This document shows, piece by piece, positions 372 to 48,833 of a DNA stretch of 64,000 nt. Made by a program: the position numbers and the translations under genes. The number at the start of each line of letters is the position of its first letter. The stretch's first letter is position 1. The DNA comes from Paragordius varius. Taxonomy: Eukaryota > Animalia > Nematomorpha. The notes under the pieces were generated by a model. The model was not told where the DNA came from. It worked only from the letters and a program-made list of their open reading frames with translations, and made no database searches. Where the stretch lies: positions 10,292,001 to 10,356,000 of the forward strand of contig OZ176051.1 of the NCBI GenBank assembly GCA_964247055.1, in the 5' to 3' direction.

Positions 372-2825
372 TTATGTCGTTATCGAAGATATAAGATGTT
401 CACCATTATTTATATTATTATCATCACCATTGATTTCTGCAGCCATAATCCGTGCCTTATTCGCTTGTTGGATATGTTGATTCATAGGGTTTTCAGGAGA
501 TTTTAGCCATTCTTTTCGAAGCATTTGTTTAACCTGACTGAGCCGTAAGTGTGGATTTTCTTTCTTTAAACGTTCCAGATGGCATGATTCAAAAGCGGCA
601 AATGCGGCCCGCATTCTACGTTCCGGGTGTTGGTCTATATCACTAATTTTTCCATCATTTGTGCTATAATGGATAAAAAAATGTGACAAAAAAACGGAAA
701 ATGAAAAACTAAATTTGGAGGGGGAAAATGGAAAACAAAGTGGCAGTTTTTTATTCTGAGTTAAGTTTGAATGGCTATATTTTTTCAATTATAATTTTGA
801 TTGTAATTCATCGAGCCCTAAACGGCTTGATTAGATAATTTTACGGAAATTGTATATTGATATTTTTCAATAATTTTTTTTTAATTTTATCCTATCTATA
901 AAATAACCCATTTTTAAATTATTAAAGCTGGTGGTTTTCTGTATCTTGATATCAGAAATTTTTAAAAAGTATAAGGCCCCGAGATAACAGAAACTATTGG
1001 ATATAAATGTATGAGATTTCAATAAATAAACTACTGCGAACTTATGCGACTTAAAAAAATGTCATATTGGGTAGGCAAGTATCTAAGGGGAAAATTAAAT
1101 ATGCTGGTCGTGCTTATCGATATACTGTAAATTTTAACTGACAACAATAATTATTGATTAGCTTTATATAAGTTAGTGGTGGGTTAAAACCATTTCTACC
1201 TTATACCAAATTTTTTTATCAAAAAATGAGCATAAAAATAGATGTATACATATACAAATGGTTCTATATATATATTTATGCCAATTTTTAAAAAAAAAAT
1301 TTTTTAAAGTTAAAGCTGGTAAAATTTTGCAACTTAATAGAATTAAGGCAACGGTATTCCCGAAAGAGGGGCGTGAAAAATTTGGAGAATTTAATTATAT
1401 AAAACTAGAAACAAAATGAAGGATTCCAGGTGCGAATTAAAGATTTGTCACCGATATGTAAAATATATTTCAAAAATGCAGATATAAGGATCTCATTGAT
1501 TGGGATTTACATAATATTGTGATTTTATATTTTTTGATTTTTTTGAGAGGGGGGCGCAAGAATTTATATTTTAATTTGGTGGGGCGTGAACAAAAAGTTG
1601 GAAACCAGTGTCTTAAGGCATACACAATTACAAAGATATAAAACTTAAAAATAATTTCGAAAACTATAAAACTGCCGCTCTTTAACTAATATTTGGCTTT
1701 GGTATTTTATGATTTGACTTTGCATTAAAATAAAAGTGTGAATAATTCCTATACCACAAATCGGGTCCTTGTTAAACGAAGCCCAAAAAAACATAAATAA
1801 ACGTTTTAAATGTGTTAGTATGTAACAAATATATAATTATAATGTAAGAGTTATATATAGTTTTCATTTTTGTAAAAAAGGGTTGGCGCATAGACATTTT
1901 CTTTAATATAATCGAATTTCGCTTAAAAACCTGTGTAAGAGAACAACTAAAAGACTTTTGCAAATATGGTTACTGCAAAACTATTATATATAAAATGATA
2001 TTAATGCATACTTTAAAAGTGACAATGCTTGATCAACATTCCTGGCCTGGTCATCTAAGCTAAAACTTTTGTTAAAATTTTCTTCCAATTCAATCGGTTG
2101 AACGACATTCGATAATTTTGTGGATATCTCTATATTTATTATTGTTACAAAAGGGTTTACTGTTGTTTAGGGCTTCCAGTTCGGAAGATTTCTTATTTGC
2201 GATAGAAAAATGGGTTACTTTGTTGACCATTTGTGTGGTTGGTTTTCCCTTCAATTGACTCATTTCATCCTCATACACTTTTTTATTTTCCATTTTTCGC
2301 ATCAGCGCTTCTTGTTTTTTGCGTTCCATCTCGTCCTAAAAATAAAAAGTTTATAACTGATAAAACAAATCTAAAATGATTAGAAAAAGAGGCTACATTA
2401 TATAAAAAGTTATTTGCTAATTTTAAATTCTTCCGAACTCCATTAATTCGTAAAGTTGATCTATATTTCAACAAATGTTAGTACATATCTAATTAAAATA
2501 AAAAATTGTATCAATTTGATATTCCTAGTAATGAGAAAAACATAAAATTATTCAATCAACGTTAATAACTGCGGTTAAGAAATATAATTTTATAAGCGCT
2601 AAATACTGAAGTGATTCGCAACTATAATTATTAATTGATGATGGCTTAAAATAGAATTGATATTACCTTTCTTTGGTTTTTTCGGTTAATAATTTTATCA
2701 TCATCTCTCCATAATTCATCTTCTTTCTCTTGTTTTATTTTTTCTTTTTCTTGTAACTTTTTTTCCTCAATCCGTGCTCTGGCCTCTGCAGCTTTTGAAT
2801 TTTCTCCTTTAAATTTTTTGGGCAT
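372..2825 (-). CDS. CCDC124: Coiled-coil domain-containing protein 124 (Lso2-like hibernation factor), 4 exons, 247 aa
   Basis: Exons complement(2667-2825, 2161-2335, 2012-2129, 372-663) give one open frame. It starts MPKKFKGENSKAAEARAR and contains LEENFNK..ARNVDQALSLL and HPERRMRAAFAAFE..LERLKKENPHLRLSQVKQMLRKEWLKSPENPMNQ. Introns are 331, 31 and 1348 nt, all GT-AG. Confidence 0.95.
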
Positions 2826-27113: not shown

Positions 27114-29459
27114 TTTTTTGGACGTAAACTTTGAAGGTTATTCGTTCTTTGTCATGTTGCTTTTGTTCAAAAATCACGTTATTTTTTGTATGTCGCCAAA
27201 ATTATACCGCTAGGTCATAATAAATTTTCATTATTTTATTTTTTTTTATGTGAGGCTAGAAACAAAAATTAAAATAATTGCTAATTTATTTTTTTTAAAA
27301 TTCGTGAGTTTTAATAACTTGGGGAAACATGCTATAAAAAAGTTAGAATTCGTATGGCGTTTTGGTTGTGGGAATCTTTTTGGTAAACAACCCTGCATAT
27401 GGGAAATCGCAATAGAATTCGCTAAAATTAATGCATACTCCATTTAACATTACCCTAGTTACGTTTTTGGGGTATCAGAGCTTAATTCTGTAAATAAACT
27501 ACTGTTTTGAAAGTTATTTTAGCTAAAATTAATTAGAAACATTGTTATTATTTATTAAATAAAAAAGTTTATATTTCTACAGTTTTGTTCTTTGAAGCAA
27601 AATTGTGACACCCCCAACACGACGATTGAAACAAACTGATATTAAAATTAAAATATATCGAGTTTTTGCTGATTGTTAATTCTTTACCTATCAAAATATA
27701 CCTTATTTCGACTGTTGCGTTAGCGGATTAAAAAAATTTAAGAGATGGGCAAAAAGTTTGATATGAGGATTTTTATATAACATTTTTTAAATTTGTATAA
27801 TGCGCTTAAAAGTTCGGCCTATTACCTTAAATTCTAAAAATATTTAAACTTCAAATCACTCTTGGATATAAAACTACTCTAACAGGCCGTGTAATAAAAT
27901 TTTGAGATGATAAAAACGTCCAGCATCATGAATTATATAATAAAGTGTTTTTATTATATCCCAAACGCCCTGTTTTCACCATGCACGATAATCTTCACAA
28001 ACCTTTGCCCATAAATTAAATTTTTAAGCAAAATATATATTTTTACCAAAACTTTCTCTGAACTCAAAATTTACCATTAATTTGTATTTTTAAGAAAAGT
28101 AGCACATTTTAAAAGGTTAATAACATTTAGCCCGGTAAGAATTAATAAATATTTGCCTTTTATAGATTTAATTTTTAGAATGAAGCATTTAACTTTCACC
28201 AAAAAAATTTTAATTAACAATATATGCTAAAAATTGCCATTTTCTGATATAGCAATCACAAAAGTCTGAAAAAAAATAACTCGCAAGCGCCAAAACCAAA
28301 AGCACCACATTTTCTTATCATATAAACTTTATCAGGATATTTTGTATACCCCGCGATTTAACGCTGTATTATAAAAATTGAATATTTAACCAAAAGTTCC
28401 CATTTGTGGTGATTTATAATATTAATAAACAAGTTTTGGAGTTTGCTAAATTTTAGATTCTAGCACCTGTAAAATTATATATATTTTATTATATAGGACA
28501 ACAATATTCAATTAAAATCACAAATAAAAAAATAGGTAATTACTTAAGCTCTGTGGTAGGCAGCTCTCTTGGTTAAAATTAGAATCGGAAATTAATAAAA
28601 GCCAAATAAAAGATTAAATATATTTAAATAGATTACCTAGGGATATATCATTTTTAACAGCATTTATCAATCGAGCGTGAAATTACTAGTCACTTGGATT
28701 TTAACGCTATAAATTTTTTAGACTCTAGATCTGTTTACAAAATTCAAAATAATTTAATAAATATTATCAGAGAAAAGGTATCAGAATTCTCATGGTGCTT
28801 TGGTTTTTAGGGCCAGATATAAAGGAGTTGTTTTGACTTTTGTTGCAATTCCTCCGTATCGAAAAATCGATGCTTAATATTATTTTTGGTGAAAAGGTGA
28901 ATCATTTCTCCATATATATAAAATATAATTATTAACTATATTATTAGCTAGCTTTATTTCTACAGATTTGGCATCTTAAGTCTCAAATTTTTGGTACACT
29001 CAAATATGGGACTAAAATACAAGCTAAAATGCAGAGATTGCTCGATAATCTTTTAATATACACAGTGTACACAAAAAATATAATAATATAATTTATAAAT
29101 TCGAATGTGTATCAGGAATCTCATGGTGCTTTTTTGGGGGCTTTTAGTGACATAAGAAGTTATTTACGCTTTTGCGGTAATCCAAATAGGAAAATGGCAA
29201 AATTTGAGCACAATTTTCGTAATAAATTTTTTGCTGAATGCTATATGCTTCATTCCAAAATATTTTACTAAAATATATCATAAACTACTTATAAAAAGCA
29301 AAACAATATTTAATTTTTAGGTGCGGGCTCCGAAAGTCCCAAATTTTTTTTGCTTCTCCAAGACAGGTTTGTTCTTTTTAAATAAATGATTACGCGATAA
29401 AATTTATAACAGAGTTAAAATTTGACCCAATTAAAATGAGCGAACATTGTTTAGAAACA

Positions 29460-29900
29460 TTAGGCTATATATTTAGGAGTGGAAATTAATAATAATAATA
29501 CAATACCAGAAATATAACGAGGACTAGCCATAGCCAGGGCTAAAAGGAAGTCGTATCGCAAGATATAAGCTACACAAAAATAACCAAAACTACCAATATA
29601 AAAATTTTAAATACCATAATATTCCCAGCTGCGAAAGCTGGGTTTGCAAAATCTAATTAAAAAGTTATGCAATCTTTTAAGCAAACTTGCAGGAAAACTT
29701 GTTAAAAGATGGACGACAAACGCACTAATGAATGGGTCCGCAATACAATCAACTCTAAGACCTTCAAATGATAACAAAACGGAGATTAGGCTACTTTGGG
29801 TACGTCATCCGCAAAAACGAATTGGGGAAAACAATCATGTAGAGGGTAAGCGTTAAAGAGGCAGACCCAGAAAAAGATTGTCACAATAATTAACAGACGA
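29460..29900 (+). mobile_element. Decayed RTE LINE 3' fragment
   Basis: Reads LQMITKRRLGYFGYVIRKNELGKTIM..EGKR*RGRPRKR, matching the RTE C-terminal KRKLRYFGHVxR..EGKRxRGRPRKRW. Confidence 0.7.
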
Positions 29901-32261
29901 CACCCACTTTACGGTTTTAATCTAATTAATTTACCCTCAGACAGATTTCACGAAATTCATCAAAAGTTTAAACTAACTATGTCATTCATTTATTGATATT
30001 TACAAAAGAATCAAAATCTTTAATGAATCCTAAGCTCCAAGATTTACAAGTACCATGAATCCTGATGCATTTTTCTGCATATACAGTCCACAGGGGGCGC
30101 AAAACATCTAAAGAAAAAACATATATTCGGATAAATTTAGGCTCCAATATTATCATATGATTTTGATTGGAGCCTTACAAGCCATTTAACAGAATTGTTT
30201 TACTTTTGTGGTATATGCTTCATAACGAAATTTTGTGATTCACTAAAGATTCAAACAAATATTTAATATAAAATAGCTTTTCAAACAAACAATGCATATC
30301 ATATACGGACCTACTTGTAGTGCAAAATGCTCTATCACGGGCTAAAAATTTAATTTTTTATTAGTTTTTTTGTATATTATTTAAATTTTTTTATAATAAC
30401 TACATATATATAAATTGATAATCGCCTTCAACAATGCATTTATAATGAATCCGAATTCCCTACTTCTATGTCTTTAATTTTGAAGGCGGAGAAAAAGGGC
30501 CTATAAAAATATATCAAATGAAAACACTTTTCTCAATAATGTTTTTATAACCTAACAATGCATTTATCATTTTGCAGCTGAAAAAGTTAAAAGGCGTGTT
30601 CTTTAATTTTTAAACAAATATACTTGTATAACCGTTTCGTTAATTAAATCAAAAGGTGCTTAATATAGTATAATTTAGAGATGATAAACTAGCAACCAAC
30701 CAAGCCGTTGTTATCCAACCGGTCGACCAGCATTTGATACCTACCTTAATTTTTTCCTTTGTAAAGTTTTATCTTTTAAGCTACAATTTTATTTAAATCT
30801 TAAAAACCACGTTGCGATTTTGAGAATTTCAGTTTTGTTTCAACTTTTTCCGACATCGTTTCCGGTGTCAATACATAATTTATTAAATACATTGTCTATC
30901 ATAAGATGTTGCAAAAATCATCCTTTTCAATTAATTCTATGGATGGGTGACTAGATTTATCTAAATCTGATTATTTGACTATCATGACAAAAATAAAGCA
31001 TTGCATTTTATATTATTAAAATAAAATAATATGAAATAGTTGGAAATTGGCTCATGAATTTCAAATTATATTGAAAAGAGAAAATTAATCACTTTTTGTC
31101 AGTAAAATTTAAGAGTGGTGTTGATATATGGTTCTCACATAAGTTGAAAAATACAAATTAACTAAAATACTAAAAAAAGGTTATTATCATATCTATATAA
31201 ATATATTAATGTGCGCATGAATAAATAATTTTTTAATTTATATTTCAACTCTTGTGTGATGGCTCAGTAAAAAATAATTTATAGAGCAATAACTCATCAC
31301 ATATCATATTTATTAAAAGTTTAATTTCCATGACGCAGTTTGGTTTTTTTATGGTTGACATCAAAATAAAATGCGTAAATGAAAGTTAAAATTATATTTC
31401 AATTTTTTCTTCTGTATCGTACATTAACATAATTTAAAATACTTTTTTCGAAAAAAATAATTTTATACCCCCTAAACAAGCCTTGCCAATTATGGCAAAA
31501 CAGAATATATCCGTTATAGGTATAAATGGTTCCGGTTCCTATTAGGGTTGTACTGTACATATGTATCCAATTATAATAATAATAATAATAATAAAAATTA
31601 GTAATATATGTGACATGGTAAATTGATTATGGTAATAAGACATATAAAAATATATCAATGTTGTTTTGAATAGGTTTGGTTGGGTACGTAATTTAACGGT
31701 AAAGAACGGTGGTTTAGTAAATAAATAGAACTTCTGCCAATCGTCATAACTTAAATGATAAAATACACCAAAAAATGCTAGAAAAAATGGTATTCAATTG
31801 AATTTTGGTTCAAATATTTTAATCTTAAATACAAATTTTACACATAATTTAAGTATAATTGTTTTCGGCAATTCAAAAATTAGGTTATAAACAACTGGCA
31901 ATGTTAAACAACAAGGAAACACTTAAAATATGATTTCTCCTGCCATGCTGCCAATTTTAATGAACGATTTAGTAAAGAAACTGGGTAATAAATAAATTAA
32001 TCTGATTTTATATCGCAAACCCTTAATAAGAATAACTATCCTCATTTTTATTTTGTTGCAAATATTGAGAGCCAATATGAGTGAATTTAAATGCAGAAAA
32101 ACTTTGCCCTTGAAGCTTAAAAGGGCATATAATTCCATGGTTTTAAATCATTTACACTGCGAACCTGATTTTGTATGTCCATTAATTTTCTTGCTATGCA
32201 ACAAAGGGTAAAAGGGTCTCTAATAACTAAATTTTAAACAGTTAGCATTCATCATGTTTAA

Positions 32262-32828
32262 CACTTCGATTCGAATTGGGGTGTCTAAATACCCCAGACT
32301 AAATTTAAGTTAGGATTTGAAAAAACTACTGAAGGAAACGGTCCCAATTTAAATTTATGCTTCTAATAAAAATTATATAAATATGTTAATATATCTAAAT
32401 AAAATTTTGTTTTGAAAAAAAAGTTCCATGTCAAACTACTTCGACTCCTTTTTATTTTACAAAATTTTTGCAAAATATCGTCTTCATTTAATTTTAAGAG
32501 TAAATATAAAGCTAAGTTTTTGTTTAAATTACATCTGATATTGATAGAAATAAAAAAAGCCGTTTATTTTGTGATAATTTTTAATTTTACCATTTCACAC
32601 ATGTCACGTTGACGAAATTTTTACCTTTCGGTTTTAGCTTAAAATAAGTAATATCAAGTATTTTTTGAATAAAATTTTTTTATATTTCGGTGTATTAATG
32701 TTATATAAGTGCAAATTGCCATTGTTTTGATTCCTTCCATATTTTTTAAATTTAATTTTAAACAGACCTGGGGTATCCAACTACCCAATTTGAATCGAAG
32801 GACTGAAATGAATGTGTTGTATCAAGTG
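32262..32828 (+). mobile_element. piggyBac-like MITE (family C), copy 1
   Basis: TTAA|CACTTCGATTC..GGGG ... CCCAATTTGAATCGAAG(insert)AAGTG|TTAA, with TTAA on both sides. Confidence 0.8.
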
Positions 32829-34244
32829 TTAATAAATTGGTCAATAAAAAATAACAAATACGTGTCCTTTATAGATTAATTTATAATATTATTTGCATAA
32901 TTTTTATTTCATATACAATTATCTATGCCCTGTCGCGCGTCACAGTGACATGGTCGAATATTATTTTCTAAGCAAGATATTGAAGATAAAATGGGGGCAC
33001 AGGAAAGATTAATATGAACCTATGTTTCTAGTGAATAATAACTCATTCGTCCAATTAATTTTACTACAGTTCTTCAGATTTATATACTGCGTTTTATATT
33101 TTTAATGATATTCTTTTCAATTAATACTTTTTTTTAATTAATTTATTTGCTAGCCCCCAAAATTATGACTAATTTAATTAAAGACATTTATATATTTGAT
33201 AAATTCCACAATCTATTCAAAAGGAGTAGATACTCACTAGTAATGGAATTTACTTAGAGTTGATGTTATATCCCCTCAATATTTCCCGTTGCCTCACGCG
33301 ATTTTACTAGATAGAAGCGTATTATGCGTCTACAAGTGCTGACTGAAAAAGCTCTATATTCAAATTTAACATTCACAAAACAAATAACCAAGATTCTAAA
33401 AACAAATTTGGTTTAGCAAATTTGGGGAATCTTACAAAAAAGTTATATTTTACAGGGCTAACCTATTATATGGTTCTCTACGACTTGAGATTCATTGAGA
33501 GTTAGCTCATATGTATAGTTAAGACAAACTCAAACTGGACTAATTCAGTACTTTCTTTCTAAATATTGTGCATTGTTTGAATCTTACTTTTGATATGTTA
33601 ATTTATTTATGGATATTTGAGAACAAATATTTATAGTATTTTAATCAATAAGCCAATCATTGTATTAAAATTACCTGGTAATTAGGTTAATTTGTTAATA
33701 AAATGAAATGAAATGGGTATGTTAGTCTATTTGCATCCAAGTTGTTATTTATGAAAGCCATTTAAATATTATAATTTTTTTTACATATTTGATGGAATAA
33801 TTATAATAGCTTTAATCATAAATAATTTATTAATTGCTTCTAGGCTTATTAAAAAATAAATCATTGGTTATATAAGTTCTAATTCTAGCTGGATAAGAGA
33901 TTTTAATATAAACGCGCATACAATAATTCGCTGAAAATATGAATTATGATAGCAATTAAGACAAAATCTGTGAAAAATTGGAAGTCAATTTTTACCAAAT
34001 CTGATATGTTTAATTCTGCGAATTCTTGATGTAAGAAATATATTTGTGGTATAATATATCCAAATAAGTTTTAGCTTTTACTTTGATATAAAAAGGTATT
34101 TTTATATAAACATTAGGTCGATTGAAAGCTTAAGATATGTCATTTTTATTAGACTATAGAGAGTATTAAATTTATGTCAGATAGATATAAATATATATGC
34201 AAATCAACAAAAAAAGATTTCGATAGAGAAATCTACGTATCAGT

Positions 34245-34441
34245 CAGTGGAGGAGCTAAAGGGGGAGGGGAGGCTGAGGCACCGGGTGTCATAGTAAAGG
34301 GGTCCCCGAATTATAAATTTTTTTATTTTATATAAAAAAAACACCCATTTATGAGTGGTCACGGTTAAAATTTAATTATTTTTTTAAAATGTTAGGGGTT
34401 GTATGGGGAAGGAAGGGGTGGTAATACAAGCTACGCTACTT
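34245..34441 (+). mobile_element. hAT-like MITE (family F, CAGTGGCGTAGCT-type TIR)
   Basis: Ends CAGTGGAGGAGCTA / AGCTACGCTACT. Internal cacccatttatgagtggtcacgg is shared, inverted, with 47717-47963. Confidence 0.6.
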
Positions 34442-37156
34442 TTAGATTTTATGCTGTTTTACATGTGGGGGTATTTTTGCCTTTTTTGCGAGAAGCTCTT
34501 GATCTCAAAAAAAATGTGTTTATCTTATAAAATATTAGTATTATATTAATAAACGTACAACTTTCAAACATGGTTAAAAAAGCTCGGCAAGTTCGCAGTA
34601 TTTTGAAAGAATCCATGCCACTGCGAAATGTTCCTGATAAAACTTGTACGGTTTAATTATAAAAGCTTTAAAAATCAATTTTTCTCGATCCAAGCTTTGT
34701 TATAGATTAAAGTTCTTTATTCTTGTAAAATATTTGTCAGAACTAGGGTTGCGCATTTGACTTTTTCAAAAAAGTCCTGTTAGACCCAGTCAGACCATGG
34801 TCATGACCAGTCATGACCACTTTTGTAAATAAATATCATGCGATATTGGATGGAAATAATGTTTGAACGACACTTGCGTTTTTCACTAATAATGTCATGT
34901 TTTTTCTCAAAAGTCTGTGTTATACATTTTTTTGATATTTATTATTTACAAATATTTTCAATCAAAGTTATCAAGAATTTTTGTTTCAAATAAATTTTGC
35001 CACATGCTTGTGGCCTTCTGAATCTTCAAATAAATAAAATTTAACCAGCTTGTTTTACACTTTCTTTCATCATTGAAATATCCAATTATAAAATGTTTTT
35101 ATTTTATTGGTTTACATATATGGAATAATTGTATATTTTGCAAAGTGCTTATTTTATTGTTTTTCGAAATAACTGGATGTGGTTAAATGCTAATGTAATA
35201 AGGATGCATGTTTGACAATTTTATATTGTTAAATTAGCATATTTAAATAAATTTATAATAAAAAATTATTAAAAAACAATTAAATCTTACTATCTCTCTT
35301 TTAAAAAAATTACCACCAATTTTTCAAAACAGCTGTTTTTTAAATGACAATGGTCAAAAAATTAATGGTCAACTAGTCAGAACCATACGTTTGTCGAAGT
35401 CGTTCTTCTCTGACATAGTATTTTAACCCATTATGCCCTCTTTTTTTGCGTTTATAAATTTAAATTTTTTGCTATGGTGTTACAGTATCAATTCTAATAC
35501 TAAATTGCCAAATTAAAATAATTCTTTTTATAAAATAACTTATGTTTTTAGGGATTTTTGAAATTGTTTAAACTGATCCATATCCATCTAAAAATTGAAT
35601 ATTATATTCCATGGACATCGATGGAAAAAATCATTACTATGTGTTTTAGATTTAAAATTGGGCGTTCTTTAATTCATTTAAATCGATACGAAAGTTGACC
35701 TTAATATAACACTTTGTACTTGTAGAATAATATTAGTAATTATTTAAAAGTTTACTTGTTTTTTAACTAACGTTTATTCGAAAATTAGAGTCATACCAAC
35801 TGGGGAAAAGACGTAACACAGTTTTCATTTCTACATTTATCTAAATTGATTTCTAACTGTAAAATAAGGCAAAAACATTCAAAAAAATTAAAAAAATGTT
35901 ATATGCACCACTTAAAAATTAAACTTTAAATTATTGTTCTTGTTATTCACATTTTATTTTTAATATCTTAAAGTTATAGTTTTTTAACTAAAGGACATAT
36001 TACTGCTGGATATCGTTTTCAAGCTTTTTATTCATTCTGCTTATTGAGCGTTGATCACCACCCAAATATTGTCAATATTCATTATACCGCCATTTAAAAT
36101 TAAACCAGAATTTTAAAGCAAGGTGCATAATGTGGGACGAAGGTTTCTCTAACCAGCTGGTAAAATAGTCGAGATAGGTGAAGTTTCTTTCATAATTATC
36201 GATTTCAAGTGCTAAAAATCTCACCAATATAACACAAACGATTAAAACTAAATGCGATTTAGGCTGTCACTAATTTTTTTCATAGTAAAAACTAGTCTAT
36301 TCAGCAAAATGTATAACTATACATATTTTTTAAATATTTTTTAATGTCAAACAGGATTTCGTGCAAAGACATAATTTGTTTTGCATTAGCTTTTATTTCA
36401 AATTATACATATTGCATTCCTTTTATACAGTAAAGGCCCAAAAAGCATATAAAATAGTGATTGATTTAATATTCCATTTATAGGCCATTTATTTTATATA
36501 CTTTGTTGGTATTCACGTCATTTTAAATGGTACGTATTTATCGGAAAATCAAATATAAATGCTAATATATCTCTGTCTATTCCATCACATTAAATTTTAT
36601 CATAAAAATTATTACACACTAAAATTTATAGTCATTTTTTTTAATATATATATGTCTATACATAAAAATAAATTAATTTTACAGTTTATTCTGCATATGA
36701 TTAATATTTTTGAAATAAAATAAACGAAACAAAGTTTGTTTAGAAATACAATTCTAAATAAATTAATTTTTTTCTGTTTTATGACTTATTTTGTTTAAGC
36801 TTATATTGGAAACCACGGTTTTGTTAAGGATTCCTATTGTACAGTTGTTATCTACTATAACTTTGAATAATATATATTTTTTTAAAACAAAAAATATAAA
36901 ATAAATAGCTAATAAAAAAAAGGTTAATATATCTCATACCATCAATAAAAATGTATTTATTGGTCACAATTTCAATATTTTTTTAAATATTTTATACAGA
37001 TAAATAAATTAATGTTAGTTGTTAGCTGAAATAAGCAGATATAAAATTATGCTTATGTAAGAGTATGATTTTAAATATATTAAAATATATTATAATATAC
37101 GTTAATTTGAACAAAAAATGTAAAAACAAACAGATATAATGCTTTTCTCACATATA

Positions 37157-37434
37157 AAGTAAAAATTGAAATTATACGGACAAAATGTAAAAATAAAAGA
37201 CAATTTTTTTTTTCAAAAAACAACATACTATTTTAAACCTTAATCTATCCTATCAAAAACACTTAATTACAATTGTAAAATACATAACTGATTGTTTTAC
37301 CAATTTACATTTCTATAGTCTGCTTTGTAATTTAAAAAAGTGAGTTATATAATATTAAAAAAATATGGTTATCTTTTAAAAAATATTTGTGTTTATATTT
37401 TCACGTTTTGTCCGTATAATTTCAATTTTTTCTG
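37157..37434. mobile_element. Tc1/mariner-like MITE family D, 36 bp downstream of the prohormone stop codon
   Basis: TA-flanked TIRs aagtaaaaattgaaattatacggacaaaa / ttttgtccgtataatttcaattttttctg. Confidence 0.7.
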
Positions 37435-37470
37435 TAATAAACATAAATAAATATAAATGGAAAGAAAGAG

Positions 37471-38436
37471 TTAAACATTTCGACTTTCAATCGGTTTAAG
37501 GCGTAAAAAAGCTTTTTTCTCTAATCTACCCCTTTGCACTTGATTTTTACTCTCGGGATAAAAATTCCCATGAATGTATCCTTCTTCGTCTTCTGCTTCT
37601 TGAAAATCATTGGTATTGAAATTACGGTGTTGACGTTTAACTTCATCCCTTGTGTTCATGGGTGAAAGTCGTAGGAAAGCACGCTTCATTAATTCATTAT
37701 TATTACCGCTAACGTCGATTTCACGTTTCCATTGATCAGTTAGGGGGTAGAGGCTAAGGAACGGTCGTTTATTTTTACCGGTTGAGAAAGCATTATTATA
37801 ATCTTCTTCCGTTTTCTGAACTACACCGCCATTTTCATAATTGGGGTTCAATGCAATACTTGGTGATGAGACAAACAGAGTTTGAGGTATGTCATACTCC
37901 TCACTGGCTTTATTGGCATCAAAAAAGGCGGACACTTTGGCCCTTCTATCCAACGGGTTTCGCACCATAAAAAAAGCTCTCTTATCCATTGCGTTCCTAA
38001 CATCGGCATCGCCGTAAGGCAAAAACCCATTGTAGGTATATCCCCGTTTAGAAAATACGGGTTGAACCTTGAGAAAAGCTCTCTTAGCAAACGGTTGTTG
38101 GATTTTAAGGAATGCTCTTTTGCCCAAGGCCGGATTTATTCGCATAAATGCCCGCCGTTCAAAAGCCGGTTTGATTTTCATGAAGGCGCGCCCTTGTCGT
38201 TCCATCAAACTCATTAGCTGGTAATCATCAGGCGATAACAATTGTCGTTTATGTCTCCCATGCGATTCTAAACCTTGTTGAGTCAAAAATGAGTTATCAT
38301 GGGTTAAAGGGTTAGCGTTTACATCAATCAAAGTTTTATCCCCATTCGTTTTAGCGAACGTTTTGTCAAAAATTAAAATGCCGCAGAATATTAGTGTCAA
38401 ATAGAGATATAGGATGCCAACTTTAATTTTTTTCAT
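37471..38436 (-). CDS. Neuropeptide-type prohormone (321 aa, single coding exon) with repeated AF[LMF][RK][ILV]..P peptides
   Basis: The true start is Met29 of the listed ORF (ATG at 38436). A signal peptide (MKKIKVGILYLYLTLIFCGILIFDKTFA) is followed by about a dozen dibasic sites releasing AFMKIKPAFE, AFMRINPAL(G), AFLKIQQPFA, AFLKVQPVFS, AFFMVRNPLD, PFLSLYPLTDQW, AFLRLSPMNTRDEV and AFLRLKPIESRNV. Confidence 0.92.
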   Translation of the reverse strand: MKKIKVGILYLYLTLIFCGILIFDKTFAKTNGDKTLIDVNANPLTHDNSFLTQQGLESHGRHKRQLLSPDDYQLMSLMERQGRAFMKIKPAFERRAFMRINPALGKRAFLKIQQPFAKRAFLKVQPVFSKRGYTYNGFLPYGDADVRNAMDKRAFFMVRNPLDRRAKVSAFFDANKASEEYDIPQTLFVSSPSIALNPNYENGGVVQKTEEDYNNAFSTGKNKRPFLSLYPLTDQWKREIDVSGNNNELMKRAFLRLSPMNTRDEVKRQHRNFNTNDFQEAEDEEGYIHGNFYPESKNQVQRGRLEKKAFLRLKPIESRNV

Positions 38437-40745
38437 TATCACAGTAAAGTTAAAACAAAATTTTTTTAAAAAAACGTAGAATATCCAAAAGTGAAAATTG
38501 TGGAAAAGTCCCTCTTTCAACGCCGCTTGGATGGAATTGTTTAAGTAGGATAATATATATATTTAAATCTAAATATTTTTGAAAAATGTTTTATGCAAAT
38601 CAAAAATATAAATTGGCATTTGTTATTTTCCGGGAATATGAGAGCTATAACGGAGCAACAATAAATAATATAATAAGTAATAGTTAATTAAACTAATGGA
38701 ATTGAAAAAATTAATATGTTTGTGTGTATGTGGGTAATTTAAGATAAGTTGTGTAATTAATTTGCAAAAACTTGCCAACCAGCCATAAAATGATAAAAAA
38801 ATTTAGTGTACACGGATTTTAATTATTTTAAAAGGATTGTTTTTGTGTGCCTTTGTTAAAAGTGTTGTAGATGTGTGTCTGAATGTCAAACTAACTATAA
38901 TACCCAGCGCGCATAAAAGAAAGATAAAACAAAAAATTGGAATATAAAATTCTTGTGTCTTTAAGAAAAATAAACTATTTGATGGGACAACAACACTGAT
39001 TTAGTAGATGGAGAAAGAATAAAGCATAAAGCAAACTCTAAGGAGGAATCCTGAAAATAAAAATGGAAAATGTGTGAAATGTGATAAAAAAATATTATAT
39101 ACAACAGCAATGTGGTGACGATGGAAATTATGAATAATAAATACAATATTAATAATAATGGAGTTTTAGAATTCTAGCTGCAATATACTTTACAGGGTTT
39201 GACATAAAATATGGAACAAACACAATTTTTCTTGTTGTCAAAGGAAACGGAACACTTTTAAAACTTCTTTTTCCTTGTAAAATGAATTTACAAAACAATA
39301 TAATAGTGAAAAGCTAAAAATGCATTAAAATCAATTAGTTAAAAATAATTTATCAAAAAGGAAAATTATTAATATTTCTCTAAAATCTTTTTAGTTCGAA
39401 CTTGGGGGCCATAAGTGAAAGCATCCAAAAAAATTAATTTGTTTAAATTAAATATATACATTTACGCATAAAAAATTAATTAAAACTAAAATTGTAAAAG
39501 TTAAATCTTTCCATATCTATATATCGCAAAATAACTTTATGTACCTGTCACCAATTAATTTATAGCAATTATATTTCAAAATGTAAATGAAGAGATGAGA
39601 ATCGTTTTTTAAATGCATACAGATATAAACGTTTGAATTCAATATTAGGAATAATATAGTAAGTTACACATTTTTGATTCCAAAAATATTGAGCAAGTAA
39701 TTCCAATAAAAAAATTATTATTTCAAAGAAAAAAAAGGAAAAAAAGTGACAGTTTTTTATTTTATACTTATTTAATTTTTTTACTGGGCTTAATAATTTT
39801 CTTTACCTGTATTTCACTTCTAAATATGAGATTTTTGAAAAAGCACATATTATTGTTTAAAATAATTATCCTTATATTCCTTCCGTTATATATATATATA
39901 TATATATAATATTGGGGGAAGGTGTCAGATATAATTAATAAAAATGCATAGAATTATGTAAAAAAAATCATTAAAATCTTAAAAAAAGTAACATAAGATT
40001 TTGGTTTATAGATTAATATAAAAATATATTTTATATAAAATAAAAAATGGTAATATATCTTTTATTTTTATGCGAAAAATGGCTTTTTCTAAATTAATTT
40101 TTTTTATTACCGGGCATTGGTTATATGTAAAAACTAAAAATAATAAATATTCATGATAAAATCCTTAGACTGTATTCTAATTTTTTCTTTTATTAATATA
40201 ACTAACTTTAACATGAAATATCTCTCTATTTAAAAGTATAAATTACCATTTACAGTTATTTTGTGGAGGAAATTGTCATTTTTGAAGCCATCCAAATTAA
40301 ATTTATGCATATAAAAACATTTTTTAAACTTTAAATTGCAGGAATCGCAAAACCTTTTTTTGTGTTTTCTTCGATCCAGGTTTAGATTCCATAATCCAAA
40401 TATCTTCATAACAAATTAGCTGTTATTTTAGTTAATGGTTCTGATCAATTAAATATATTTAGCTTTGATTATTTTATTTTGGATAAAAAAAATAGATATA
40501 AGCATAAAAATTTTACAATGAAAGCTAAAATTTTGTTGACCAAAATAATCTAACAATATTTTTAAAAGGCGAACAGTTAGCGAATCTAATAAAATATAAA
40601 AAGGAAATTGGTTAAAAATTAATATTATAAAGTTAAATTTATTTCAAATAAAAATTTCTTAGTTTTATACAAAGATCTTGATTTATTACATGTTTATATA
40701 ATTAAATAAATTATATTGTAGTATTGGTATTATTATATATAATTA

Positions 40746-41791
40746 CTAGCGTAAATCTCGTGCTGCTACGCAGCCCGAGGAAGTCCTTCGGACTTCTGGG
40801 GGGGCTATTTGAAATAAGGGACAATAAAATGATCCACATATGTGGATTATTTCGAAACATTATTTAATAGATATTATTTTATAGGAATTTTAAAACGGAG
40901 CATACATACTAATATATTGTTTAATTGGGGAAAAATAGATTTAAAAAATTATTTTTGTGGACTTTTTTTAAAAATGGCATTTTACGGGGGGAGCGGGTAA
41001 AAAGAGGGCCTACATTAAAAAGGTGAGTCGACTATGTTCGGCGCGATCAAAAATAAGTGAACAAAAATCATATTTGAAATTGAATTGTCCAACACGTTTT
41101 CCGGAAAATTGACTTAACCCATTTTTCACACGGGGTAGGCCCGAACTGGGGACCTAATTCCAAAAAAGGGCGAAGCTGTTGTCGGGACATTTATTAATAA
41201 TTAAAATTTTTCGATATTTGGATATGATTGGGTTCACCGGTTTTCCGGAAACAGAGCACAAAGTTACATGAGGAATCAGTTTTTAGCGGGTAGCTCCTCA
41301 CCCAGCAGCTATCATCAAAGAAACGCTTCACTAAAATTTTTGCTTTTTAACAGGGATGGAATTCCTATAGCATTTTTACGGTCTCATACCTAGAGCGAAA
41401 AATAGATTTAAAAAATTATTTTTGTGGATTTTGTTTTTTGAAAAAAATGGCATTTTACGGGGGGGGCGGGTAAAAAGAGGGCCTAAATCAAAAAGTGACT
41501 CGACTATGTTCGGCGCAATCGAAAATAAGTAAACAAAAATTAAGAATGGTCCAACACGTTCTCCAGAAAATTGTCTCAAAGACACGATTTTTGTGGACTT
41601 CAGTTTTCAAAAAAAACGTTTTTCACACGGGGTGGGCCCGAACTGGGGGCCTATTTCAAAAAACGGGCGAATCTATTGTCGGGGCATTCATTAATGATTA
41701 TATTTTTTCGAAGTTTGGATTTGAATGGGTCTACCGGTTTTCCGGTACCAGATCACAAAGCCAGCATTTTCCATTTTTATAAATATATACC
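40746..41791 (-). mobile_element. Non-autonomous Helitron, copy 2
   Basis: Reverse-oriented. CTAG end at 40746-40749 with the same double hairpin; the 5' TATATATTTATAAAAATGG lacks an intact TC. Confidence 0.9.
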
Positions 41792-44700
41792 AAAATATTG
41801 TTTAAAATTTTGGCTGAAAGACCGATTAAATTCTATTTATTAGGGTATTTGGTAAAGTGAATTTGTTGGGTCATATTGTAAAACATCTTAATTAAATATT
41901 TTTATGCTCTTTAACTAGCCATTATATAAATTTTAAAACATTATATTCGATTCCTGAATATTTCAGGCTAATTGAACGTTTTAATGTTAAAGAGCATTTA
42001 TTGAAAACATTATGGGTTAATCATTTTAGCGACATATTTTTAGATGTCATCGAGAATTCGTTTCCCATATAAACTATTTTACTTTGAAAACAAACCTTAA
42101 ATCCGTATATTTGATGATTAAATTTTGACATTTTGTTGTATTTTAAAAATTATGTCATTAGACACAGGGCCACAGTTCCAAATTTAAATCAATTTCTCGT
42201 CATTGGTAGTTATTAAAACCAGAACACATATATAGTTTATATTTTTATAAAATTTGGTCAGATCTCAAATACAATTGAAAAAATGCCTATTATTTAATAG
42301 TTTTGACTTATAAAACTTATAAATAAGATTATTATGCACAAAAAGCTGAATTAAAATGACAATATATGTGTAAAAAAATTAAATGTACCATTATGATAAT
42401 TTATAGTGTAAGTAGTTTTGAATGTTAATACATAATCCTAAATATACCATTTCCTATGTGGAAAAATTTTAAATTATATAGTATACAACAGTAATAATAT
42501 TGGTATTAAAGGGTGACTTTAATTGGTAAATTGGGAAAATATGAGGCGTGTGAGATATAGCTTAAATCTTGAAGAGCATTTACATTTTTTTTCTAAGCAC
42601 TAAATAGTAACCCTTAAAACCAATATAATATTTTTTACTGTAATGATATGTAAATGAATGCCTTTTTAACAATATTCGCGATATAATTATATTAACTGTA
42701 TCTATTTCAGTATGGTCTATTAATATTAATATCATAAAATAATAATGTGGTAATAATCTAGTTGCAGTTAAGTATGTTCCGTTAACGGAATATAAATCAA
42801 TTAATTATGATTTTATGTAATAAATAAGACGGTAAAACTCTAAAAACTTTTTTTAATAGCCACCACCAAATAATGAAGCCATTCTTATAGTATGTGATAA
42901 TCGAAAAATATGTTAAGATTTATGATAACAATAATAATATCATTCAAGATATTTTCATCATAAAATTAGAAAAGTAAAAAGCATAAGTGCAAAAAGTGTT
43001 TAATTGACATTAAATTGCTTAATTTTATAAATCAATCAATATATCAATCAACCAGTTTTCCGTTCAAAGGATTCAAGCTTAAAATAATAACAATATGCGC
43101 TAAAAATATGATTGAAAAAACAAAAACAAATAATGTTGTTATGGATTTCATATAGTAAAAATCTATCGATTGTTCGACTAATCAAATTAATCGTTAGTTG
43201 GAACTCATTTTTCTTGTTATGGTGGGAAAATTATACCACGCAGCCGAAAGACGAATTGATTCTCTACAGTGGTCCACACAATGAATAAATAGTAAGGTGG
43301 CTATAACTTATTTCAAATACCCTTTTTAAACCAATTCATTTTAACAAAATTTTTAATTCAAACAATGTGAATTGGAATGAAGAATAAAATCGTGTGACTT
43401 CAATATGTAAAGCTCTGTCTGGTCCCGATTATTAAAAGGTCAACCGAATAATAATTGTAAATTGTTTTATTGATTATTATCTAAAAACTTGTGATATTCT
43501 AGCTACTCATGCCCTATTATAAAAACTATAAAACTCAGTATATATGTATTTTATTCAAAGTTTATGCCAAGTGTCAGCAAACTAAAAATAAGCATAGTAA
43601 ATTCGATTATTGTTATTTAGCTCCACCTGTGGCCTCTATTCACTAAGAAAACAATCATTATAAATGAGAAATATACGCAAAATTTATTTAGTTAACAATA
43701 AAATATTAAACCGCACCTTTTTCTGCAAATACACGATCAGGGAGAATGCCTGGACCCTGTTACTCAAAATTGTAAAAAAAATCTATTTAGTACGGCAGTA
43801 GAAGTCCAAGATTTTTAACAACATTTAAATACCCTTTTATCTATATATAATACCGAAATGGTCATTAAAAGCTCTCGTTACTGTAATAAACATGCATAAT
43901 CTTACTTTCTCGAACTAAATTTATTACCTCTTATTTTAGGGATGAATAGGTTGTAAGATATTCATATATTTTAGGAAAATAATTTAATATAATAAACTAC
44001 AAGATATGATAATTTCATAAATATAGGGTCAAAAATATGGATGGTGTTTTCGGATAAATGAGTTACAAGCTTTAGTAATCTTAAAATTCAGAGATTAGGT
44101 TGCCTATAACGCAGCTAAAAATTTAATTAAACGGTGACCTTTTTTAGATTTTAGTCAAAATTAAAAATGTTTAAAATTAAATGAATGATAAGTTTATGAT
44201 TCAATTAACCGGCATGTATTATATTTTCCAAGAGTGTATTTTCTTCTATTGTATACAGGGAGTTTTAAAATTCTAGCTTCTTTACTTATAAAAAGTAACC
44301 CGTTTACCTGAGATGAGAAAAAAAACATATTTTTTTATAAAATAATTAAAAAACATAGTGTACCGAATTGGTTATCATGTTTATGGGAAAACTCAAAGTT
44401 TTTAAACCATTATTTTTAGTTATTATTATATGTCAAACCATTCAAATTTTTTTATTTTTTCAATTAAGACGCTCTACTTTATAAAAGCTAAGGTTTATTA
44501 AAACACCAAAATTACTACATCCTTATTTATAAGTTATTAAATAATATTTTATAACAAAATTTATGTAAAAGAACACCGCTGAAAATTATTTTTTTGGCGT
44601 TTTTTTAACGTACCCAATTTTTTTCGGATTTGAAAGGTGGTTACCAAAATTATATTAGTTTAAACTCATTAATATTATTTTAAAATATCTATTGATCATA

Positions 44701-44916
44701 ATTATTCAATCATTAATGCATATTAATGTTGCTTACCATTATTTTTAAATACAGTAGTGTATGATATAAAACAAATTTTGTTCATAATTAAGCAAATTCA
44801 AAAAATAATTATAATATGAACCATTTGTTGTTTTTTACCCATACGCTACTGTGTTGCCAATTGGCCAAAATACTGTGAATTGAACAACATTAATGTGCAT
44901 ACTGTATATTCTAAAC

Positions 44917-45195
44917 CAGGGGTGTCCAACATTCGGCGCTCCATGACATTAAGTGTGGCCCGTAAAAATTTTCATAATTAAATATGATCACATAATCTTA
45001 GTAAAATTGATAACTATAAAACAAATTATCTATTAAAAACTCCAACTAGAAATTGTTTTAGTCTGTTAACAGTTTACAGTTGTCATGTTTGTAACTAATA
45101 AAATAATATTTATTAATTCTCATTATATTTTGAATGCGGTATGTTGATTTTTTTGAAAATGCGGCCCATAAGTCGATTTGTGTTGTCCATCCCTG
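44917..45195. mobile_element. hAT (Charlie-type) MITE
   Basis: CAGGGGTGTCCAAC / GTTGTCCATCCCTG ends with flanks ttctaaac / ttgtaaat (6/8 TSD match). Confidence 0.7.
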
Positions 45196-45252
45196 TTGTA
45201 AATCCTTTTCAAATGCACATTCTTAAGTAGTTTGCATTTACAAATGCAATTT

Positions 45253-45586
45253 CAGGGGTGTCTAACACACAGGCCTTTGAAATATGTCCATTCAGCTAAA
45301 TAATTTAGCAAATACCAAATAATACGATATTCTATGATTTACAAAAATATGCTATTATATTTATCTGTATTAACAATTCGACAAATTTTCTAAAGAAGTC
45401 TTCCCATATTACGGCGATCGCGAAAATTGGTCAAACAAATAGTAGTTATATATGGTGGTTAGTTTAATACAGTCTTTGTAATCTAATAAAATTATTATAA
45501 AAAACTGATATACTTTTCGTATACGGGCCGCCGGTGTATTTGAGGGAAAATGCGGCCCGTTAAACCACTTGTGCTAAAAACCACTG
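45253..45586. mobile_element. hAT-type MITE related to 25890-26148
   Basis: Left end CAGGGGTGTCTAACAC, subterminal gggccgcc / gcggcccg, right end ..AACCACTG. No clear TSD. Confidence 0.4.
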
Positions 45587-45710
45587 TAAATGAAAAAAGC
45601 CGTTTAAATTAGTTGACCACTATAAATTATATCGTGTTAAAAAGACTAGGGTATTAAAAACTATTTGGATTGGAGAATACCTTTTGAGCTAATGCAAATT
45701 TGTCTTTTAA

Positions 45711-46261
45711 CACTTCGATTCAAATTGGGGTATCAAAATAACTCAGACTAAATTTAAATTAATATTTTCAAAAAAGTATTGAAGAAAACAGTCACAATTT
45801 AAATTTATGCTTCTATCCTAATAAAAATTATATAAATATGCCAAAATAAAATTGTGTTTTGAAAATCAAGTTCCATCTCAAACTACTTCGACGCCATTTT
45901 TATTTTACAAAACTTTTACAAAATATCGACTTCATTATATTTTAAAGGTAAAACTAAAGATAATTTTTTAAATAAATTACATTTAACATTGATAGAAATA
46001 GAAAAAGCGGTTTATTTTGTATTATTTTTTAATTTGAGAATTTGACACATGTCACGTTGACGAAATTTTTACCTTTCCAGTTTTAGCTTAAAATTAGTAT
46101 TATCAAGTATTTTTGAATTAAACTTTTTATATATTTCGGTTTATTAATGTTATATAAGTGAAAAATTTTGTCATGGTTTCGATTGATTTTTAACAGGCCT
46201 GGGGTATCCAACTACCCCAATTTGAATCGAAGGACTAAAATGAGTGTGTTGTATCCAAGTG
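45711..46261 (+). mobile_element. piggyBac-like MITE family C, copy 2
   Basis: TTAA at 45707-45710 and 46262-46265. Collinear with 32262-32828. Confidence 0.8.
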
Positions 46262-47079
46262 TTAATAAAGTGATTTTGAAAGTAATTGACAACCGCCTAC
46301 AAAAATGTTTACATAAGCCGCAATTTTTTTTGTAATGATACATGCAATTATTTCATCATTCATCTAAAACTTTATAGATTTTCAAAGGAACATCCTCTAA
46401 AGCTATCTAAATCATATTTTTTGTTTACCGATATATGCGTCTGAATTTTTAACATAAATAATTATTAAAAAAATTGTTGAATAGAAAATTTGAGAATAAT
46501 AATGAAACCGATTATTTAGCAGGCAAATTTGTCTTTCTCTTTTTATCATTTTACTTTTTAAAACGAATCACCAAAATATTTTTTAATTTAGTCATGAGTT
46601 AGGAATATATTTAGTCCTAAATAAATTAATTTTATATGGAAAAAATGTTAAGTGTTGATGAACAATTAGGTTTATTCATCCAAAAAATTTGGTTTTCACA
46701 ATGAATTGGAAAGAGACGACTGTCAAAAAATTAAATTAATCAAAATGTCACATTTTCTGTGATTGTATTCATAAAAGTTTTTTTTTCATAAAAAATAGAA
46801 AAACCTTAAAAATTATGGTTAACTAAGGATAGGATTAATGTTTGTACTAAATTTATTATCGTGTATATAAACGACTTCTTTTTTATGTCATAAACTTTCA
46901 GGCTAAAAATGAAAATCAATTATCAAATCATAATTTAAATCATGTGAGCTTAAATTTGATTTATATATGTTATAAGGGATTGGGATTTTGTCCATGCTAT
47001 CAAATTTTATATTATTTATAGTAAATGACTCTTTCATCTAAACAAGAGAAAGATTGATAAGAAAGAAATATAGGAATAA

Positions 47080-47634
47080 TCTATATATTTATAAAAATGG
47101 AAAATGCTAGCTTTGTGATCTGGTATCGGAAAACAGGTAGACCCATTCAAATCCACACTTCGAAAAAATATAATCATTAATGAATGCCCCGACAATAACT
47201 TCGCCTTTTTTAAAATAGGCCCCCAGTTCGGGTCCACCCCGTGTGAAAAACGGTTTTTTTGAAAATAGAAGTCCACAAAAATCGTGTCTTTGAGACAATT
47301 TTCTGGAAAACGTGTTGGATCATTCAATTTCAAATATGATTTTTGTTTACTTATTTTTGATTGCGCCGAAAATAGTCGTCTCGCTTTTTTGATTTGGTCC
47401 CTCTTTTTACCCGCTCCCCCCGTAAAATGCCATTTTCTTTAAAAAAACAAAGTCCACAAAAATAATTTTTTAAATCTATTTTTCCCCCTAATTAAACAAT
47501 ATATTAGTATGAATGCTCCGTTTTAAAATTCCTATAAAATAAAATCTATTAAATGTTTCGAAATAATCCACATAGGTCCCCCAGAAGTCCGAAGGACTTC
47601 CTCGGGCTGCGTAGCAGCACGAGATTTATGCTGG
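47080..47634 (+). mobile_element. Non-autonomous Helitron, copy 3 (short)
   Basis: a|TCTATATATTTATAAAAATGG ... double hairpin ... CTGG|t (CTRR end). Confidence 0.9.
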
Positions 47635-47716
47635 TAATTAATAAAAACCAAGGGACATGAATTTTATTGGTCGATGAAATGTATTTTGTTTTAATTTCGA
47701 TTCTGCATCTAGTTTA

Positions 47717-47963
47717 GAGAGGCATAGCTTGCATTTCTGGTACCCCTCTCATTCTCTATGCCACCCCTTGCATTTTAAAAAGTAATCAAATTCAAACCGT
47801 GGTGACCACTCATAAATGGGTGATTTTTTTACGCATTATTCAAAATAGAAACTTATAAATACCTATTTTTTTAAAAAAAATAAAATTTTTAATGATTCGG
47901 CGACCCTTCAACTATGGCACCCAGTACATCAGCCCCCCTTTCCGCTTTCTAGCTACGCCTTCT
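47717..47963 (-). mobile_element. hAT-like MITE family F, copy 2
   Basis: Ends GAGAGGCATAGCT / AGCTACGCCTTCT. Inverted homology to 34245-34441. Confidence 0.6.
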
Positions 47964-48833
47964 AATTAGATCATATTGGTTGTTTGACAAAAAATGTGTG
48001 TCTTACTTATTTTACATTTGTCTGTATAATTTTCAATTTTTACTGTATTTTTAAAATTGGATTATTATTATAAATAACGTATTGTTTGTGGTTCAAAATA
48101 AGCAATAGAAATGTTTATTGGTAACACGCTCAATTTTATAATTTATTTAGAAAGTTTTGATGGAAAACAGGTTTGAAAAGTTAGGGTTCACTTTATTTTA
48201 CGATTTGCTTCAATTTTTACAGTAATTAATATTGGAGATTTGTTAAGTAAAACAAACTTTTTTTTCTAATAACACGCTTTACTTTGATATATTATTATAC
48301 CCATCCATTTATAGGATTTACGCTAAAAATCCGTCAATGGTTACACATTAAATAAAATTATCCTCAATCTCGTGTGTTTAAAATCTTTATGTAGAAATAA
48401 ATAAAATTTTTAACAAAATAAAATTTACTAGTTATATGTTCAAAAGTTTCATTGATTAACACATTTGGGTATTAAAATTCAAAAGTTTTGGCATATGTAT
48501 CGAGATAAACATCTAACTTTTATGATATTACACAAATGAATCGAAAGCAACTTACCTAAAAAGCAATTTTTAAATATAATACCATATAATATTTTTACAA
48601 CTCACTAATTATATACGCTAAATACGAAAATCTTCATTAGTAATTTTCCAATATCATAAAGAAAAAATTAAGGCTTGTTTACACTGTGTTTTGTAAAATC
48701 ATCCAATACGTTTAGATTTAAGGCCGAATAACCCAAATTAAAAGGGTCCATGACTAAGAAAGTAAACAATGATGACGAAAATAGAGGACAAACCCACCAA
48801 AATTTCGATCATTACACATAATTCAATATTAAA

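Follow-up and report, generated by a model that had tools for sequence, protein, structure and literature searches.

The minus strand of the 64-kb stretch of DNA analysed here (the window) carries, at 37471-38436, an unbroken reading frame of 321 codons that runs from its first ATG to a TAA stop, and this is exactly the interval and the 321-residue product that the original prediction had assigned to a prohormone (Table 1). Counted from stop to stop, the frame spans 349 codons and is the longest in the window by a factor of 2.5 (the runner-up has 138), and the probability of 349 open codons arising by chance is about 4e-14 (27% GC, stop probability 0.084 per codon). The coding sequence is also a GC island: its GC content is 39% as a whole, against 25-26% in the flanks, and 300-nt bins give 38-43%, with flanking values of 17-27%. 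The earlier description of the gene as intronless holds for the coding sequence, but introns may still lie in the untranslated regions. Contig depth in one DNA run from the source organism is equal over the coding sequence and the unique flanks (about 300-900), and the gene is therefore single copy. A six-frame motif scan of the window found neither a paralogue nor a second motif array. The scan also picked up a lone AFFKIGP at 47203, which lies outside any cleavage context. At a distance of 35 nt beyond the stop codon, in the 3' flank or untranslated region and outside the coding sequence, starts a MITE-like element with a summed contig depth of about 1e6, compared with the few hundred given above for the gene and its unique flanks.

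Table 1. The AF-peptide precursor gene, the parts of its predicted product and the neighbouring repeat element, with positions in the window
Feature	Position	Strand	Basis
Complete single-exon coding sequence, AF-peptide precursor	37471..38436	minus	open frame, GC island, chance probability
282-nt high-copy element with 82-nt inverted terminal arms, MITE-like	37155..37436	none	inverted repeat I1; depth
Putative signal peptide, residues 1-28: MKKIK, 18-residue hydrophobic core, TFA/KT	38353..38436	minus	hydropathy, -3/-1 rule by inspection
N-terminal propeptide (residues 29-62), followed by RHKR furin-type site and Gln-initiated spacer QLLSPDDYQLMSLME with terminal RQGR	38188..38352	minus	sequence
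Four exact 12-residue units in tandem, residues 84-131	38044..38187	minus	sequence, codon comparison
Spacer GYTYNGFLPYGDADVRNAMD and KR, residues 132-153	37978..38043	minus	haplotype comparison
Unit 5, AFFMVRNPLD-RR, residues 154-165	37942..37977	minus	sequence
57-residue spacer and KR, residues 166-224	37765..37941	minus	sequence, haplotype comparison
Unit 6, PFLSLYPLTDQW-KR, residues 225-238	37723..37764	minus	sequence
Unit 7, AFLRLSPMNTRDEV-KR, residues 253-268	37633..37680	minus	sequence
Acidic Gln-initiated spacer QHRNFNTNDFQEAEDEEG... and KK, residues 269-308	37513..37632	minus	sequence
Unit 8, AFLRLKPIESRNV, and stop codon, residues 309-321	37471..37512	minus	sequence

In addition to delimiting the gene, we were able to dissect the precursor that it encodes. 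The N-terminus fits the signal peptide proposed in the original prediction: residues 6-23 have a mean Kyte-Doolittle hydropathy of 2.5, compared with -0.87 in the remaining protein, the most hydrophobic 15-residue segment (2.57, against at most 0.81 elsewhere) begins at residue 8, and the putative junction TFA/KT satisfies the -3/-1 rule as judged by inspection, the signal peptide and the cleavage sites having been called by rule and not by trained predictors. There are 12 internal dibasic sites, in agreement with the dozen or so KR, RR and KK sites reported earlier, and one RQGR, which has Arg at P4 and P1 and would itself be cleaved under the known convertase rules. The protein contains eight units of the form A/P-F-[LMF]-x-[ILV], seven of which follow KR, RR or KK, while the remaining one follows RQGR; the cores listed in the original prediction (AFMKIKP, AFMRINP, AFLKIQQP, AFLKVQP, AFFMVRNP, AFLRLSP, AFLRLKP and PFLSLYP) are all present in these positions. 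The tandem array reads, in order, AFMKIKPAFE-RR, AFMRINPAL-G-KR, AFLKIQQPFA-KR and AFLKVQPVFS-KR. Dibasic sites as such exceed expectation only slightly (12, where shuffles lead one to expect 7.9; p ~0.07). The dipeptide [AP]F stands directly behind seven of the 12, and AF occurs 10 times against 1.4 expected, a count that was reached in none of 20000 shuffles. Within the 57-residue spacer, SAFFDANK and NAFSTGKN are possibly decayed AF units.

The ends of the units are far less uniform than their beginnings. An amidation signal, G-KR, is confined to AFMRINPAL (one of the eight units), and Gln directly follows KR in two spacers, QLLSPDD... and QHRNFN..., just as had been noted earlier. The mature part contains no Cys and 35 Asp and Glu residues, which are concentrated in the spacers; its single Trp ends unit 6 and is followed by KR without an intervening Gly. 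Taken as generic features of multi-copy precursors, a signal peptide, flanked repeats, the lack of a Pfam domain, few Cys residues and acidic spacers were all found here.

The codons of the repeats carry a clear record of constraint. Among the four tandem units, pairwise identity is 62-75% at codon positions 1+2 but 17-50%, mostly 25%, at third positions, which is essentially random, and, when the five core codons are compared pair by pair among the eight units, 48 of the comparisons show only synonymous differences. As third positions are saturated while positions 1+2 are retained, the duplications are old, and it is the peptide motif that has been kept and not the DNA. This pattern points to maintenance of the AF motif by purifying selection. 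A second haplotype, found in run X1, has two insertions in the coding sequence, both in frame: one of 3 nt, which adds N to the 57-residue spacer, and one of 21 nt, which adds SNYMGQG to the spacer behind the tandem array. The reading frame remains open, and there is no substitution in the coding sequence among the differences listed. In the flanks, the listed indels have lengths of 1, 1, 2, 1, 4, 1, 1, 3, 1 and 6 nt, and the 5' flank differs by 13 substitutions and 8 gap letters per 228 nt. Runs X5 and X6, which carry other organism labels, yielded a few short pieces with 0-2 differences per 151-184 nt in the coding sequence; so near an identity marks them as low-coverage data from the same taxon or one very close to it, and they offer no independent test of conservation. 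Thus, the interval 37471-38436 is a real gene under selection.

Evidence of expression was sought in the available runs, and no run recorded as RNA contains the coding sequence. Five presumed-RNA runs with the same species label, of unspecified stage and tissue, hold next to none of the sampled words of the coding sequence; their status as RNA is a guess, and they are small and date from 2015 and 2017 (the DNA runs are from 2024). One of these five, X7 (29 million letters of filtered contigs), has nothing that matches the 3.2 kb around the gene. We regard the missing transcript as weak counter-evidence, an absence of evidence, and the functional claim stays inferential.

The search for relatives covered very large collections. 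A Pfam scan with E up to 10 matched no family, and a word-indexed search of 5.8 billion proteins produced 969 candidates, none of them significant. That search did not return the precursor itself, which is therefore not in the collection. Exhaustive phmmer comparison with 1.84 billion cluster representatives gave one match, P0001 (E 5.9e-4), and nothing below 1e-10, and in a scan of JGI metagenome contigs none of 598 pattern matches was confirmed. A literature search with the pentapeptide cores retrieved nothing relevant except papers on FxRIamides. None of these searches gave a clear one-to-one match to a described prohormone; the earlier statement that these peptides cannot be assigned to a described family stands, with no match in Pfam and, among 1.84 billion proteins, a single marginal one that is driven by the repeats.

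Comparison by protein embedding was more informative about class. The nearest ESM Atlas clusters for the whole protein are all arthropod multi-copy neuropeptide precursors (NPLP1 0.91, PBAN 0.90, tachykinin 0.90, allatostatin-A 0.89 and FMRFamide-related 0.87), and the repeat region alone again retrieved multi-copy neuropeptide precursors, with lower scores. Together with the empty Pfam scan, this agrees with the original reading of the protein as a prohormone, and it supports membership of the neuropeptide-precursor class but not of any one family. Four-residue coincidences, as we take them to be, link the AF-peptides to ecdysis-triggering hormone (FLKI...P..L-amide), to AKH/NLP-47 (through TDQW in unit 6) and to nematode NLP-8/15 (AFxx[LFM]), and the number of such coincidences indicates how easily matches this short arise.

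The gene probably encodes a multi-copy precursor of neuropeptides or peptide hormones, which is either restricted to its lineage or diverged past recognition. From the arrangement of the sequence, the AF-peptides are most likely the selected products, acting as neuropeptides or peptide hormones, and we infer their processing, their neuronal or endocrine secretion and their action on receptors as follows. The precursor would enter the secretory pathway co-translationally and lose its signal peptide at about residue 28. Subtilisin-like prohormone convertases would then cut RHKR, RQGR and 11 further KR, RR and KK sites, and the basic residues would be trimmed off by a carboxypeptidase. Eight peptides with the N-terminal core A/P-F-[LMF]-[KR..]-[ILV]-x-P would be freed, comprising five 9-10-mers (AFMKIKPAFE, AFMRINPAL-amide, AFLKIQQPFA, AFLKVQPVFS and AFFMVRNPLD) and three 12-14-mers (PFLSLYPLTDQW, AFLRLSPMNTRDEV and AFLRLKPIESRNV). 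AFMRINPAL alone would be amidated. The spacer peptides would also be released, and two of them could cyclise to pyroGlu. The eight AF-peptides would act on one or more receptors. Counting against this reading are the missing transcript, the lack of any orthologue in the collections searched, the single amidated peptide among eight and the marginal enrichment of dibasic sites.

Several other explanations have to be weighed against this one. It is extremely unlikely that the frame is functionless, whether as a chance or decaying ORF or as a fragment of a mobile element: neither a transcript nor homologues were found in the runs and databases searched, and a high-copy MITE-like element lies just beyond the stop codon, but so long a frame would hardly arise by chance, it coincides with a GC island, it is single copy by read depth, its motif has been kept although synonymous sites are saturated, and its frame is preserved in the second haplotype. 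The architecture indicates secretion and processing and not cell type, and the product may lie outside the nervous system, as a secreted multi-peptide precursor of, for example, a gland or the tegument, perhaps antimicrobial or aimed at the insect host in the parasitic stage. Stage-restricted expression would be in line with the lack of a transcript in the probable RNA runs, amides are missing from most of the peptides, and the sole database match is an insect neuropeptide precursor. However, the peptides are short and have a net charge of about 0 to +2, which by inspection is untypical of antimicrobial peptides, the resemblance to insect MIP falls far short of what mimicry that keeps the Trp pharmacophore would need, and the ESM neighbours are neuropeptide precursors; we therefore consider such a product improbable. 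The original prediction had also offered a derived FxRI-like family, in which an F-x-R-[IL] core of FxRIamide or FMRFamide-related type would have acquired C-terminal extensions. FxRIamides (S-Iamides) are described from lophotrochozoans, namely molluscs and annelids, by a C-terminal heptapeptide xSSFxRI-amide (PMC4200219), and the pearl oyster precursor contains IPSSAFMRI-amide (PMC4200219), a literal match to the AFMRI (and, in kind, the AFLRL) of our peptides. The nematode FLP-1 cluster is furthermore among the weak ESM neighbours, at 0.78. Against this, none of the eight units has Gly and a basic site directly after I, L or V; the residues behind position 5 are K, N, Q, Q, R, Y, S and K, and then comes Pro. 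The core is N-terminal, with Phe preceded by Ala or Pro directly at the cleavage site and without the SS of the xSSFxRI arrangement, so that no RI- or RL-amide ends would form. HMMER found no FaRP or FxRIamide precursor, the Pfam FARP family was unmatched, and the host is probably an ecdysozoan, whereas the FxRIamides were described in lophotrochozoans. A derivation from this family, with its defining amide after I or L found in none of the units, is very unlikely.

The one database match calls for closer treatment. MIP/allatostatin-B peptides are defined by a C-terminal W-X5-8-Wamide (PMC6380545, PMC11004728), and P0001 is an insect-type MIP/allatostatin-B precursor, with units such as AWQDLNSAW-G-KR that by inspection fit W-X6-W-G-KR. 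Its alignment with the AF-peptide precursor stays in register across 4-5 units because both proteins repeat every 12 residues. The Smith-Waterman score is 93. Shuffles that kept the architecture reached 79 at most, with a mean of 32 where the basic sites were preserved and of 40 where the first and last residue of each segment were preserved as well. As repeat units are not independent, whole columns were permuted instead, five 10-mers against 11 MIP units. For a match chosen post hoc, 28 of 200000 permutations of the 10 columns reached the score of the natural order (p = 1.4e-4) and, with the same proviso, 100 of the 40320 permutations of the eight interior columns did so (p = 2.5e-3). The pattern common to the 10-mers and the MIP units is Ala1, an aromatic residue at 2, an aliphatic one at 5, Ala8 and an aromatic residue or Leu at 9; F-X6-[FL] in the AF-peptides occupies the place of W-X6-W in MIPs, and Gly10 occurs in one unit. 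Copy number and peptide length are likewise compatible with MIP precursors (at least 5 copies, 9-12 aa). These observations speak for a strongly diverged MIP/allatostatin-B precursor, in which the Trp anchors became Phe or Leu and one amidated copy was left; such peptides may still signal via an SPR/MIP-type receptor.

However, the defining W-X5-8-Wamide is absent from the AF-peptides, which have Phe and Phe/Leu at the equivalent positions, and the sole Trp has no Gly behind it. Amidation, a feature of all copies in MIP precursors, is signalled in one unit of eight, and units 6-8 have no hydrophobic residue at position 9. Moreover, P0001 was singled out post hoc as the top match in an enormous library, the HMMER and shuffle statistics are inflated by tandem repeats, the permutation p-values become borderline once about 100 repeat-type precursor families are allowed for, and about one-third of the identity is made up of residues (K, R, A and G) that an architecture of this kind dictates in any case. 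The link to MIP is somewhat better supported than that to FxRIamide, yet the defining motif of MIPs fails, and we consider a diverged MIP precursor unlikely. The MIP/allatostatin-B system includes the insect MIPs and, in C. elegans, NLP-38/MIP-1 and NLP-42. That the gene is the horsehair-worm counterpart of this ancient system, with its ligand recoded by exchange of the Trp anchors for Phe or Leu and by loss of most of the amides, is quite doubtful. Were it true, the gene would join the few recorded examples in which a neuropeptide conserved across bilaterians has lost its pharmacophore, and it would reveal the extent to which such a ligand can change. A still more speculative idea is that the worm releases AF-peptides during its parasitic stage and that these engage the MIP/sex-peptide receptor of the insect host, as part of behavioural manipulation. 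If the link to MIP fails, the gene adds one more lineage-specific peptide family, of a kind common in nematodes, and its general interest is modest.

A lineage-restricted or unrecognisably diverged precursor of neuropeptides or peptide hormones remains the probable reading, and it has a bearing on a little-known group. Nematomorphs, which are sister to the nematodes, are known to manipulate the behaviour of their hosts. Horsehair worms have a brain and a ventral nerve cord, and the suggestion in the original prediction that the gene would be more striking in a nerve-reduced parasite does not apply if the host is a horsehair worm. Nematomorph neuropeptides are nearly unstudied in the literature searched: one paper reports only a CCHamide-type peptide from a nematomorph, and a study of nematode FLPs names Nematomorpha as a gap. 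An eight-copy motif claimed by no family is a concrete set of ligands for receptor deorphanisation, and the gene allows the rate of turnover of peptide families among nematodes, nematomorphs and arthropods to be tested.

In summary, the AF-peptide precursor can be set beside several known designs. It shares with FxRIamide and FMRFamide-related precursors the multi-copy layout and an F-[LMV]-R-[IL] core, found literally as AFMRI in the oyster peptide, but here the core is N-terminal, unamidated, without SSF and continued by an extension that contains Pro, and the host clade is probably a different one. With MIP precursors it has in common multiple copies, peptides of 9-12 residues and a 12-residue period (9 residues, 1 and 2 basic), as well as Ala or Gly at position 1, an aromatic residue at 2, an aliphatic one at 5 and an aromatic or hydrophobic one at 9, and AFMRINPAL-G-KR matches AWQDLNSAW-G-KR at A1, N6, A8 and G10; it differs in having Phe or Leu in place of the Trp anchors, one amide only, and three units (6-8) that do not fit. 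More generally, it is the C-terminus that is conserved in amide families, whereas in the AF-peptides it is the N-terminus, and amides are nearly absent.

Similar in plan are arthropod NPLP1, the orcokinin and pedal-peptide types and the nematode NLP-8/14/15 (AFD..) and NLP-9/21 (GGxRAF..) precursors, whose peptides mostly lack an amide and vary in the tail, the N-terminus being conserved. The likeness would lie in the many copies, the N-terminal core placed after KR, the variable and often acidic tails and the scarcity of amides; NLP-8/15 peptides also begin with A-F-x-x-[LFM], and among the ESM Atlas neighbours NPLP1 ranks first (0.91, with 174 of 256 features). No sequence match to NPLP1, orcokinin or NLP precursors was found by HMMER among 1.84 billion proteins, however, and the AF-peptides have neither the acidic Asp3 and SGF/GF motif of the orcokinin type nor the core that marks NPLP1, N-[ILV]-[AG]-x-L-A-R. 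Processed precursors of the multi-copy type are disordered proteins. Although its peptides fit no family established here, the AF-peptide precursor works like known multi-copy precursors.

The precursor gene, a single-exon coding sequence for a secreted AF-peptide precursor, is closely followed by what looks like a very high-copy MITE, placed in its 3′ flank or UTR. The inverted terminal arms of this element are 82 nt long and 77% complementary, and in run X1, the DNA sequencing run of the source organism, summed contig depth over the arms reached approximately 1e6, compared with approximately 300–900 in unique sequence. The element was also abundant in X5 and X6, two sequencing runs carrying other organism labels.

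Features mapped in the window around and beyond the precursor gene
Feature	Window positions	Strand	Remarks
Element with inverted terminal arms	37155-37436		282 nt; starts 35 nt past the precursor-gene stop codon
Large inverted repeat pair	40860-41790 and 47080-47555		Arms 84-94% complementary, in several blocks
ORF	372-788	(-)	Contains the stretch …RRMRAAFAAFE…ENPHLRLSQVKQMLRKEW…SPENPMNQ

On the 5′ side of the gene (38571-38794), run X1 contained a pair of haplotypes represented at comparable depths (186 and 217). The 13 substitutions and 8 gap letters that separate them across 228 nt indicate very high heterozygosity in the non-coding DNA of the sequenced individual(s).

The large inverted repeat pair may represent a composite transposon or a foldback element. 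Its arms enclose approximately 5.3 kb. Within the left arm lies an internal duplication, with direct repeats spaced approximately 470–500 nt apart, and ORFs across the arms have in common the peptide stretch …SGHSLMIIFFRS.DLNGST…. Apart from the precursor gene, which forms an isolated GC island, the approximately 20 kb at 28000-48000 are poor in ORFs. Finally, the stretch encoded by the tabulated ORF may resemble the C-terminal domain of CCDC124-type proteins.
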